Notes under the pieces: model-generated
Told to the model about the DNA's origin: nothing
Databases searched by the model: none
The model's input: the letters and a program-made list of their open reading frames with translations, nothing else
Program-made: the position numbers and the translations under genes
Shown: piece by piece, positions 4,321 to 8,764 of the stretch
Numbering within the stretch: the first letter of the stretch is position 1
How the letters are laid out: every line of letters begins with the position of its first letter
DNA from: Dicyema japonicum
Taxonomy: Eukaryota > Animalia > Dicyemida
Reading direction: 5' to 3'
Assembly (NCBI GenBank): GCA_011109175.1
Contig: RDEW01000060.1
Location: forward strand, 59,206 to 123,205
DNA length: 64,000 nt

Positions 4321-4752
4321 ATTGAAAGAAAAGCGGAAAATAAATACTGTTTATACTTATAAATGTGATTGAATAGTAACTCTAATCTGAACCTTGAAGT
4401 ATTTAAAAGAAATTTAGTCTACTTAACCATACGATGAGTAAGAAAGTAATAATTTGAGTATCTCGAATGAACAGAGTTTATCAGACGGAGCATTCATCAG
4501 AGGAACAGACTTCATCAGAGGTAGTTTTCCGAATGTTAGGGATCAGATTAACAATTTTTAATAAGATGCTGATTCGATCACAAAAAATTATTGAACTGAA
4601 TAAAAATCATAGATAGGAATTAATTATTTTAATATAAAACTATTAATTTATCAACTTTATATATTTGTGAATTAAATATTAATCTTTTGATACATTATAA
4701 AATTACAAATAGTTTTTAATAAAGTCAGTTAATTTATACCCAGTAAATCATA

Positions 4753-5021
4753 TTTAAAACTGCCATCCATCCAAAGTGGACCCCGCAGACATTATCGATG
4801 TTGCGTTGCCTCTCACTATTGCAACAGAGATCAACTGGAGTAGCGTCGTGGCTTTTTAGTGTAGCTAAGCGTCCAAGTTTCTTTAGGAAGCGAAGCGATT
4901 TTCCACTTATTCCTCCAGTTGTCTCGACCACTATCAGATAAAACGCGAATCGGTCGCGTAGCGCTTCGTATTTCTTCTCCTTTGCCATCATTGTTTTTTC
5001 CGCGGAATACAGTGTGTCTAC
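4753..5021 (-). CDS. C-terminal part of the CRE restriction-like endonuclease (one frameshift)
   Basis: [50 protein letters not shown].../ISVAIVRGNATSIMSAG..F*; it continues exactly where the + strand ORF ends ([10 protein letters not shown]). Confidence 0.88.
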
Positions 5022-5122
5022 CGGATTTTTGTGGATTCTCTGCACGTTGTGTCGTCTGTTCTCGTTGTGTTGCTAAAAGAAGAGGATAAGTAGAGAATAA
5101 GAAAGGAAAATCAGAAAAGAAC

Positions 5123-5386
5123 ATGCAGAAAACTGTAAAAGAATATGAGATCTGCACAAAGTGCAACATAATGAACAAAAGAAAGCGGATGATCCATTGC
5201 ACAGCATGTTCGTATGGCTTCCACATGTCCTGTGCCGGAATGACTAAAAGAGCCCTGGCTGCCATTTCCGATTGGCACTGTCGATCTAGTCTCTCACCAG
5301 ATAATACGACAAACTCTTCCCTACGCTACCCTTCTGAACATGTTCCACTAGACCATCAGGAAATACTTGAATTGATCTCCATTTGA
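5123..5386 (+). CDS. N-terminal PHD-finger segment of the CRE ORF (frameshifted from the RT part)
   Basis: CTKC-x9-CTAC-x4-HMSC...WHCRS C4HC3-like spacing; also present in the decayed copy at 54112. Confidence 0.75.
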   Translation: MQKTVKEYEICTKCNIMNKRKRMIHCTACSYGFHMSCAGMTKRALAAISDWHCRSSLSPDNTTNSSLRYPSEHVPLDHQEILELISI

Positions 5387-7395
5387 CACACACACGAAGA
5401 CTCCTGATTAGGATCCTTAAATCTGCCCGTATATCTGTCGCGGACTGCCTATGTGAGTGTATTGAAAGGGCAGTTTCTTTGGACGACTCTGATGATTGGG
5501 TACGGTTATTTTGTTTTGCTCCATTCACACTATGCATACCCCATAGGAGAGGGAAAGAAGAGAAATCACTTACGTCATTAGTAAAGGAGAATGTTCACAC
5601 ATTCTTCTCAAAAAACCTATTGGCAGACTCAGAAAAGCTCACTTACAAATTTCAAAACCATGAGAAGCCAACATCGACTATCTCGGACACTCAGAGATTA
5701 AGAAGCGCGATCCGTCGAAAACTTTCGGAAGGTGGTATCCGTGCTGCGGTGAGGATCCTTGCAGATCAACAATGTATAATTGAGCCGTCCGAACAGTCAT
5801 ACGTATCACTTGTTGAGCGACACCCAAGTCTTCCCAACGACCACCGGGTTCCCCCTTGCCCAGGACAATTACCCAATCTGCTTGTCTCTGAAGAGGACGT
5901 AAAAGATGGGATCCTCTCTTTCGTCCCGAGTAGCAGTGGAGGACTAGATGGGCTCCGTCCGGGTCACATCAAAGATCTCATTGCTCATAACACGGGCAAC
6001 TCTGGGGTCCGGCTCGTGTTGGCTATCACCAAACTAATGAACAGGATGCTAACAGGGGCACTACCAGAAACAATTCGACACGTAATGTTCTCCGCAAAGT
6101 TAATCGCATTCGACAAGAAGGGAGGTGGAATACGCCCTATTGCAGTCGGAATGGTCTTCCGTCGGTTGGCATCAAAGCTTGTATGCGGAGCAATCCTACC
6201 TACGCTAATAACACAGCTGCAACCAACCCAAATAGCAGTCGGCACACCGGGGGGTTGTGAAGCGGCAGTTCATGCTGTCCGAACATTCACCGATAAGAAC
6301 GTGAACATTCCTCACGTAATCGTCAAAATTGACATTAAAAATGCTTTCAACTCGATACGACGTGATACAATTCTGGAGGATTCCTTCACATACTACCCAT
6401 CAATGTACAGCTATATTCATAGCTCGTACGGAAAACCATCCAGTCTGGTACATGGCCAATATTACATTCCATCGTCTTCTGGAGTCCAACAAGGAGACCC
6501 ACTAGGGCCCGCCTTGTTCAGCCTGGGAATTGCCCGTATCACAGGATACTGCTCCACTCCTCTAAGAGTATGGTATTTGGATGATTGCACCATGGGCGGC
6601 CATCCGAAGGATGTACTAGATTGTTTGAAAAGTCTGATAGTACAATTGGAATCCCTATGCCTAACTCTAAACACCAATAAGTGTGAAGTAACCAATTTTG
6701 GATTTCCACAGTCTGAATGGGATCTGATCCTTGGTATGTTCAGAGAGATCATTCCGAAAGCCACAGAAACCAAATCAGAACAACTGGAAATACTTGGATG
6801 CCCTCTTACTGATGCTGGAATCAGTAACACTCTAAGAACAAAAGAACATCAACTAAAAACAACATTCAGACGTCTGGAGATGCTGGACGCACACACCTCC
6901 CTATTCCTCATGAGAAACGCCTTATCAGCACAGAAACTAAACTACGTTCTTCGGGGGGCACCCTGCTACTTGAAAATGCAACAGCTCGATGCTATCGATT
7001 CCCTCTTCCGGAGTACTATTGAACATATCACAAATGTGAAATTTGACGATCAAGGGTGGGACCAAGCGACCCTACCCGTTAGGCTGGGCGGACTGGGAAT
7101 CCCTTCAACGAAAGATCTGGCTTGCCCTGCTTATCTATCCTCTTTGGGCACCAGCCGACTGCTGGTCAGGATGATTCTCCAACTCCAAACAGAATCATCT
7201 GAAATCACAGAGATGGAGCATTTGAAGGGGATGATGCCTGAGCAGAAAGATCGTTACAGGACCATCTGCGAGGATAAATATGAGAGGCTTCTGAACCAAT
7301 CAAACCAACACAGACGTGCATGTCTAGTCACTGGAAGAATCGAGTGGCGCATGGATCAATGCACTCCCTGTTGGCAGTGTCGGGACCCATCTTGA
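5383..7395 (+). CDS. CRE reverse transcriptase region
   Basis: [71 protein letters not shown] motifs. Confidence 0.95.
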
Positions 7396-7399
7396 CGAC

Positions 7400-7759
7400 A
7401 ATACTGTCCGCATCGGCATCTCCACCAGAGATTTGCCGGATCCACAAATGCCGATGTGGCCCAACCGTCGATTGTTATGGACTCCATGCCCTCTCTTGTC
7501 GAAGGAGTGCAGGACGATTCCCAAGACACAAGGCGATCAACGGAATTGTTAAGCGAGCCCTGGAGTCTGCGGGATACCCAGCCATACTAGAACCTGTTGG
7601 TCTGGACAGAGGAGACGGAAAACGTCCCGACGGGATCACAATTTTCCCATTCGAAGAGGGGAAACCTTTGATCTGGGACGCTACTTGTGTCGACAAGCTT
7701 TGCCCGTCCAACATTGTCGGGAGCGCTGTAGACACACTGTATTCCGCTGAAAAAACAAT
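7400..7759 (+). CDS. CRE CCHC zinc finger and start of restriction-like endonuclease (frameshifted from RT)
   Basis: [34 protein letters not shown]. Confidence 0.9.
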
Positions 7760-7847
7760 ATTAATCTTAAATTAAATTTTTGATTGAGCTGGTGACGTGG
7801 CTCTAATAAAGTATTAACATGTCTGAAAAGTATGAACCTTATCTTNG

Positions 7848-7910
7848 GACGCTACTTGTGTCGATAATGTCGGCGGGGTCCACTTTGGATGGATGGCAGT
7901 TTTAATAAAA
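7848..7910 (+). mobile_element. Internally deleted CRE 3' fragment next to a single-N join
   Basis: GGACGCTACTTGTGTCGA (=7676-7693) fused to TAATGTCGGCGGGGTCCACTTTGGATGGATGGCAGTTTTAA (matches the element 3' end, rc of ~4753-4793). Confidence 0.8.
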
Positions 7911-8407
7911 GAATAAATTTGTGTTGTTTTATAATAGTTACACTTAGGAATCGTCCCCTCCCTTGTCGGTCTGGGATCATTTAGTTAGTTGAGAACATAT
8001 TATTTCTTTTCTTTGACCCAGTGATCCTAGAGGTAATAATAATAGTTACAAGAAAGTCATATTATGTAGTATCTCTTTGGTTACCATGGAAACACGTAAA
8101 AAAACATGTTGCCCATAGGCTTAGGTTGCACATGTGAGATAGTATTACGTGGAAACGTATTAAATTTAACAAAAGTTGTTTGTCAATTTTTATACTTTTA
8201 ATGGAAAATTAACATTTATAATTCAAATTAGATTGTTGAGGAAAATTTCAGGAAAACTTTTTTATTTATGAATTTGTTTATGCAGGAATTTTTTTATTGA
8301 TAAATTAATTTCAGTATTTTTTATCAAAAAAATACTATTGATTTTTTACGTCATATATAAGGCGAAATTTCGGACAAATATATTTTCTGTAAGTCACAAC
8401 ATTGTCC

Positions 8408-8764
8408 ATGAATGAAACTTCTAGAAATAAATCTACATTACAAAGAGCAACGTGGTCATCACGCTTTGATTTTTTAATATCTACCGTGGGTCTTTCGATT
8501 GGTTTTGGAAACGTTTGGAGATTTCCGTATTTGTGCTATAAACATGGCGGAGGTAAAATTTTAGATAAATTTTCTTAGGAGCCTTCTTAATACCCTATTT
8601 TCTAGCAGCAATATTTTGCGGAATTCCTCTAGTGTATACTGAAAGTCTAATTGGACAACTTACAAAGAGATCAGCCATAAAATGTTGGAATTTTTGCCCG
8701 TTGTTAAGCGGTACTTATAATTTTAATCTGCAATGAAAATTCAAGGAATCGGAGTAGCATGCGC
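8408..8764 (+). CDS. SLC6 sodium:neurotransmitter symporter family gene, 5' partial; exons 8408-8552, 8579-8710, 8746-8764; ends at N 8765
   Basis: [48 protein letters not shown]|[29 protein letters not shown]...WNFCPLLS|GIGVAC; introns of 26 and 35 nt. Confidence 0.93.

Follow-up and report, generated by a model that had tools for sequence, protein, structure and literature searches.

Introduction

Inversions are common among insertions of the mammalian long interspersed nuclear element (LINE) L1, and at the point of inversion these reportedly carry a small duplication or deletion, an observation attributed to Ostertag and Kazazian in 2001. They are the signature of twin priming, in which both nicked target strands prime reverse transcription of the same RNA. 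Here we describe a 5'-inverted copy of a predicted R2-group retrotransposon with a restriction-like endonuclease (RLE) in the dicyemid Dicyema japonicum. The copy lies in a 64,000-nt stretch of contig RDEW01000060.1 (assembly GCA_011109175.1, positions 59,206 to 123,205), hereafter the window; coordinates are window positions, and element positions are counted from the family 5' end. With a probability of roughly 0.8, the copy arose in a single retrotransposition, with both nicked strands of the target serving as primers for reverse transcription of one RNA.

For twin priming, the second nick has to be made while the first cDNA is still incomplete, and overhangs of 10–20 nt favour the process (PMC4245944). 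Like twin-primed mammalian L1 insertions, the locus has one target-site duplication (TSD) around the unit, a direct 3' segment and an inverted 5' segment, a small duplication at the inversion point, and a second target end that is microhomologous to an internal site of the RNA. Its TSD also belongs to the 10–20 bp class that favours inversions (PMC4245944). It differs from L1 in its nuclease, which in L1 is an N-terminal apurinic/apyrimidinic endonuclease (APE) and here a predicted C-terminal restriction-like PD-(D/E)XK domain, and in the absence of a poly(A) tail. It also differs in the great length of the proposed second cDNA (2.7 kb, reaching the RNA 5' end), in the shortness of the first (335 nt), in the filler at the junction, and in its rarity (1 of 52 sampled copies).

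Other systems resemble the locus in part. Avian R2 proteins in human cells (PRINT; PMC11371274) are R2-type enzymes that can join antisense element sequence to the upstream target end by snap-back. That reaction is DNA-templated on the cDNA and produces an inverted duplication, whereas here nearly all of the inverted part is absent from the direct part. In the four-way junction model of second-strand synthesis by R2Bm (PMC6895275), second-strand cleavage frees a top-strand 3'-OH that then serves as a primer, as we propose here; there, however, it copies cDNA after first-strand synthesis and a template jump, while at our locus it would have copied RNA with the first strand only about 300 nt along. 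The single 5'-inverted insert of zebrafish Nimb-2_DR in DT40 cells (PMC4245944) is likewise a rare case of 5' inversion in an element other than L1, one whose TSDs are about 12 bp, but it comes from an APE-type element in an experimental assay, whereas ours is a natural genomic copy of an RLE-type element. Apart from that insert, the same study reports 5' inversions only with human L1 in human cells (PMC4245944).

The literature on twin priming, taken as the best 40 of 106 matches by occurrence of the term, deals with mammalian L1 or L1-driven copies. Among papers dealing with R1/R2 elements or with R2 proteins, three use the term; in one it stands in the reference list only (PMC2718515), and in another it is cited in connection with snap-back junctions (PMC11371274). 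We found twin priming described for no RLE element in the searched literature, where subscription journals are thinly covered. A first-pass annotation of the window, made from its letters and open reading frames (ORFs), had stated that it knew of no such description for CRE elements; within this literature the statement holds.

Structure of the inverted copy

Two segments of the element lie head to head on opposite strands (Table 1). We refer to window 5022–7759 as piece A and to the reverse complement of 4687–5021 as piece B. The + strand ORF of the element ends at 7759 with the residues encoded by the overlap, and AT-rich flank follows. The - strand ORF at 5045–4734 encodes the same overlap residues again and then about 85 more, which form the C-terminus of the nuclease domain. 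A repeat finder returned the two overlap copies as inverted-repeat arms of 32 nt that are 97% complementary, with 1 mismatch. The two pieces are otherwise non-overlapping, with 32 of 2,738 nt in common.

The repeat finder also returned a 12-bp direct repeat, AATATTAATCTT. It is present twice in the 64-kb window, both times at an edge of the unit, where dinucleotide shuffles lead one to expect 0.09 occurrences; two or more were found in 0 of 100 shuffles. At the right edge the bases AAT (7757–7759) are both the last of the element and the first of the 12-mer, and the sequence reads on as CAAT-GATGG in the other overlap copy. Since the AT-rich 3' tails of the family vary in length, it is the direct repeat and not homology that sets the 3' boundary at 4687.

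These features had largely been anticipated. The first-pass annotation had described a + strand ORF that stops at 7759 (evident in both the ORF list and the sequence), a missing C-terminus and 3' untranslated region on the - strand at 5021–4687 (on which the - strand ORF and the family alignment agree), the 32-bp breakpoint duplication with its single mismatch, and a 12-bp repeat around the whole unit that has AAT in common with the element at the internal breakpoint. All were recovered. It had also placed the 3' piece head to head with the element 5' end; that end proved to be native, and we add that a filler of about 17–21 nt, which had not been spelled out, separates the two.

When up to 2 mismatches are allowed, the filler matches nothing else in the accessible 67.5 Mb of the genome, and its only match to the element itself is 9 nt long, which is at chance level. 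The window copy is a dead copy that decayed after insertion. In alignment with its closest relatives, piece A carries a stop codon at 5384–5386 and, within 7350–7440, two deletions (5 and 11 nt, together 16 nt); piece B carries a 17-nt deletion that shifts the frame.

Table 1. Features of the inverted insertion and its target, in window coordinates.
Feature	Position	Strand	Remark
Left half of host repeat (unrelated interspersed repeat, insertion target)	4419..4686	+	87–96% identity to paralogs L072–L075
Left TSD copy AATATTAATCTT	4675..4686	+	3' end ...CTT-3' would be the first-cDNA primer
3' segment (piece B), element 2707 to 3' end, 335 nt: RLE end, stop codon, AT-rich tail	4687..5021	-	Aligned to 3' ends of ~45 family copies
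Overlap copy 1, element 2707–2738	4990..5021	-	Rare CAAT variant present
Filler, ~17–21 nt, between cDNA ends	5022..5040 (to about 5038–5042)	.	No homology to family 5' end
Inverted 5' segment, element 5' end to 2738: PHD finger, RT, CCHC, first RLE half	~5039..7759	+	Nine full-length copies start within a few nt of 5039–5043
Overlap copy 2	7728..7759	+	Rare CAAT variant as in copy 1, with one G-to-T change relative to it
Right TSD copy	7757..7768	+	First 3 nt AAT = element 2736–2738, primer/RNA microhomology
Right half of host repeat	7769..7845	+	93–98% identity to paralogs, contiguous there with left half

Uninterrupted target sites

Searching the genome with the left flank (4440–4686) and the right flank (7757–8060) revealed four loci that match both, and in each of them the two matches overlap by exactly 12 nt. 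In the alignment of these loci (L072–L075) the sequence ...GAATTA AATATTAATCTT AAATTA... is uninterrupted and holds the 12-mer once. The four sites are paralogs of the host repeat and not alleles; one lies on the same contig, at 96–98% identity. Measured against them, no target bases were lost or gained at the edges of the unit. Since the 12-mer is single in the paralogs and double here, the whole unit (piece B, filler and piece A) entered one staggered break, and the locus is one insertion with a 12-bp TSD around both pieces. An empty site carrying a single 12-mer, as the first-pass annotation had foreseen, thus exists at four paralogous positions, and one TSD brackets the unit where two independent insertions would have given each half its own.

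Evidence for a common template

Both overlap copies carry an A at element position 2736 (CAAT), where the six closest copies have G (CGAT). Among 36 distinct other copies, 34 have G at this position, 1 has A and 1 has T. Piece A differs from its closest copies by 2.2% substitutions; piece B, counted by eye in the same alignment, differs by about 2.5% outside its variable tail. Because they have this rare variant in common and are similarly diverged, the two pieces look like products of the same source and of the same age. The combination points to one template, though two RNAs transcribed from one source copy could have left the same pattern.

Comparison with other copies of the family

We compared the locus with 71 loci fetched from the same genome by BLAST with both pieces, and with three further copies added later. 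Genome searches gave the best 40 matches per query, so the copies are a sample and not a census. In 48 other copies piece A is followed by piece B on one strand, with position 1 of B corresponding to position 2707 of A, which reproduces exactly the 32-nt overlap. The three further copies, of high identity, are also not inverted, bringing the other copies to 51 with 0 inverted. The expectation of the first-pass annotation that the family would be colinear was therefore borne out, the window copy alone having its parts on opposite strands, and the count of inverted copies and TSD lengths that it had proposed gives 0 of 51 others and 8–12 bp. The inverted event is an occasional accident and not the design of the family.

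Cross-comparison of strands among the matches listed from five segment queries, together with BLAST on the 71 loci, yielded no further inverted copy. The three further copies, which had lacked a colinear 3' match, proved to be a fragment truncated at both ends (C179), a same-strand patchwork with a gap (C335:20800-25300), and a colinear copy (C334).

Most sampled copies are truncated at the 5' end, as one would expect of LINE copies. In nine full-length copies the first bases are (T)TCTG/CACGTTGTG..., which corresponds to window 5039–5043; from this we conclude that piece A begins with the native 5' end. At their 3' ends, members of the family have AT-rich tails that vary in length and fall into three subfamilies. 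Clear TSDs of 8–12 bp, with 0–3 nt of microhomology at the 5' junction, were found in seven 5'-truncated copies; a 12-bp stagger is therefore normal for the family.

Three of the full-length copies (L065, L067 and L071) have extra 5' nucleotides that repeat the first bases of the element, for example TGTGTCGTCTG twice. We take such repeats to indicate slippage at the RNA 5' end, or template jumping there. At C83:10154-12708 (L007, L051 and L055), the 3' end of a long copy lies 4 nt ahead of a second copy, which is 5'-truncated (it starts at position 2670) and has the same orientation; this head-to-tail arrangement suggests that a template jump took place or that one site was used repeatedly. 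Two other copies keep both ends and have lost internal sequence: positions 22–443 are joined to 2522 onwards at C1:2238403-2239323, and positions 325–660 to 1943 onwards at C310:564631-566012. They may be non-autonomous derivatives.

Identity of the element and its nuclease

Pfam searches of the window copy placed a PHD finger (6e-7) in 5123–5386 and RVT_1, the reverse transcriptase (RT) domain, in 5383–7395 (1e-18). No Exo_endo_phos match, and hence no APE domain, was found at E values up to 1 in the window copy or in an intact copy, and in both of these only the PHD finger stands upstream of the RT. The best matches of the RT to PDB sequences were R2 proteins, at a weak 4e-5, and a sequence search of the PDB with the nuclease piece returned no match.

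The C-terminal region was aligned with 24 public relatives. Across the 25 sequences the invariant columns comprise a C..H.C.C...H...C knuckle followed by RH, E, PD, D and K/Y, which we identify from the alignment as the RLE motif set. A model of the C-terminal 292 aa had a mean predicted local distance difference test (pLDDT) score of 87.6. In a fold search of the PDB, the modelled domain matched seven R2 structures (Bombyx, zebra finch and turtle) with E values of 4e-6 to 9e-5 and a probability of 1.00; other PD-(D/E)XK nucleases and Prp8 followed after a gap of about 300-fold in E value. Because of this motif set and the exclusively R2 top fold matches, we assign the element to the R2-group, RLE-bearing retrotransposons without long terminal repeats (non-LTR), with a predicted PHD-RT-CCHC-RLE architecture. 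The first-pass annotation had likewise called the element RLE-type, in agreement with a nuclease that is R2-like at the level of the predicted fold and with the lack of an APE match.

Strict CRE elements (CRE1/CRE2/SLACS/CZAR) are specific for the spliced-leader site. This family, which the first-pass annotation had placed among the CRE elements, lacks that site specificity: it is dispersed over many contigs in unrelated flanks, and its flanks and TSDs vary from copy to copy; dispersed RLE elements are typical of the HERO clade (PMC4640811). The public relatives include uncharacterised Octopus sinensis proteins (53–59% identity) as well as barnacle, sea-spider and moth proteins. Several of them (P0040, P0052, P0072, P0092 and others) have the same C-terminal CCHC-RLE domain behind differing N-terminal modules, namely a PHD finger (PF00628), a ubiquitin hydrolase USP/UCH domain (PF00443, e.g. 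in the barnacle Amphibalanus) or a nuclear-receptor zinc finger (PF00105). This diversity points to swapping of N-terminal modules in this LINE group. A literature search for the combination of PHD finger, RLE and non-LTR element found no paper. The copy at C316:201190-204111 (L070:1559-3355 and L002:1-2226) has one uninterrupted frame of about 974 codons with PHD-RT-CCHC-RLE order and 98% identity to the window copy; judging from this frame, the family may still be active.

Proposed twin priming and its alternatives

The junctions correspond to the two ends of a target, ...GAATTA / AATATTAATCTT / AAATTA..., opened with a 12-nt stagger. The 3'-OH of the + target strand (...AATCTT-3', at 4686) abuts the complement of the element 3' tail. 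The 3'-OH of the - target strand (...TAATATT-3', the reverse complement of 7757–7768) abuts the complement of the element from 2735 downwards, and its end, ATT-3', can pair with AAU at element 2736–2738. This primer complementarity of 3 nt is short, and of the same size as the ordinary 5' microhomologies of the family. The inverted part must have been copied from RNA, because its sequence is almost entirely absent from the direct part, and since sense-strand DNA cannot be copied from RNA, a source in RNA would call for both target 3'-OH ends to act as primers. An RNA-templated origin from two primers is twin priming by definition.

Under this reading, the first cDNA would have been made by ordinary target-primed reverse transcription (TPRT) from the RNA 3' end and have stopped after 335 nt, at position 2707. 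The second strand would have been nicked early, at the normal stagger of the family, and its 3'-OH would have annealed inside the RNA and primed a second cDNA of about 2.72 kb that ran to the RNA 5' end. There some 17–21 extra nt may have been added, as is common at 5' ends in the family. The 3' ends of the two cDNAs would then have been joined head to head and filled in. The 32-nt duplication would remain because the first cDNA had run 32 nt beyond the second priming site. The proposal of the first-pass annotation that an RLE-type element primed from both target ends, with the second primer copying about 2.7 kb, is supported by this reconstruction.

Several points weigh against twin priming by the element. 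The case concerns a single locus whose junctions are read from one draft assembly, with an ambiguous base (n) nearby at 7847. The filler obscures how the two cDNAs were joined. Only 1 of the 52 sampled copies (about 2%) is inverted, which makes the event a rare accident in the family. The variant common to both halves is a CpG-to-CpA change, which is fast and could have arisen twice. The early second nick is a step that we infer, and second-strand cleavage by R2 is usually placed after first-strand cDNA synthesis (PMC6895275). The same description of R2, and the fact that the sequence does not identify the enzyme behind the second nick, would also suit twin priming from a 3'-OH supplied by a host-made or spontaneous nick or break. 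We regard such an origin as improbable, as the 12-nt stagger is within the TSD range of the family (8–12 bp) and both edges of the unit retain the target sequence with no base missing or extra. The odds are about even, in our estimate, that the element's own nuclease cuts the second strand at a stagger of about 12 nt within about 300 nt of first-cDNA synthesis, and that the RT uses that 3'-OH on the RNA.

The remaining explanations dispense with a second primer on the RNA. An ordinary full-length insertion in the minus orientation could have been followed by a 2.7-kb DNA inversion through break repair or replication template switching, and the copy, about 2% diverged and with several indels, is old enough for later changes. 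Such an inversion would nevertheless need one breakpoint exactly on the TSD boundary with 3 nt of microhomology and another that created a 32-nt duplication plus filler, with no inverted repeats available to drive it, and it strikes us as quite unlikely. The high copy number of the family (hundreds of candidate matches), the draft state of the assembly and a sister-subfamily fragment 80 bp away all invite the suspicion of an assembly chimera, or of two independent insertions consisting of a short 5'-truncated copy and a second copy. At this locus, however, sense position 2738 is joined directly to the TSD and host repeat, which no simple LINE insertion would produce; the whole unit has a single TSD and no target loss, and the rare variant is common to both halves, leaving very little probability for either form of this explanation. 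Snap-back, in which the 3' end of the cDNA folds into a hairpin and copies the cDNA itself, is hardly credible for this unit even though avian R2 proteins in human cells are known to leave 5' junctions of this type, in which antisense transgene sequence adjoins the upstream target (PMC11371274). The inverted part would have to duplicate the direct part, but only 32 of 2,738 nt are common to the two, and it covers RNA that the first cDNA never reached.

Implications

Read as twin priming, the locus would be a known mechanism in a new enzyme class, and the example is unusually complete, combining a TSD, empty sites, microhomology, an overlap, a full-length second cDNA and a common variant. Second-strand cutting and priming by R2-like (RLE) enzymes remain under debate, and engineering of these enzymes for gene insertion is under way. 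On this reading, the second nick could precede completion of the first cDNA in at least one RLE family, and the freed end would be a competent primer for the RT. Inversions of the 5' end, which experimentally come almost only from human L1 (PMC4245944), would then also be known from an invertebrate and from another class of nuclease. Annotators should count such inverted copies as one event and not as two. If the element's own early second cut is responsible, twin priming would be general to TPRT and independent of nuclease type, and inverted copies would offer a natural read-out of the timing of second-strand cleavage in R2-like elements, a disputed step.

Sequences surrounding the insertion

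Homology to the host repeat ends at 7845, just before the ambiguous base, and the repeat is not resumed in the window. At 7846–7935 (+) lies a short piece from a sister subfamily of this retrotransposon. In it a GTCGA microhomology connects element positions ~2655–2673 with the last bases of the coding region, after which comes a different 3' tail (AAATAAAAGAATAAATTTGTG...). The piece appears to be an insertion of its own, internally deleted, 80 bp from the inverted copy. At 7947–8044, a repeat of about 100 nt has over 35 matches at 88–95% identity among those listed in the genome and is probably a small short interspersed nuclear element (SINE) or miniature inverted-repeat transposable element (MITE). 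Farther along, at 8402–8578 (+), an ORF fragment bears the exon signature of a sodium:neurotransmitter (SLC6) transporter; because this signature lies 640 bp downstream, the insertion may be in or just upstream of an SLC6-type gene.

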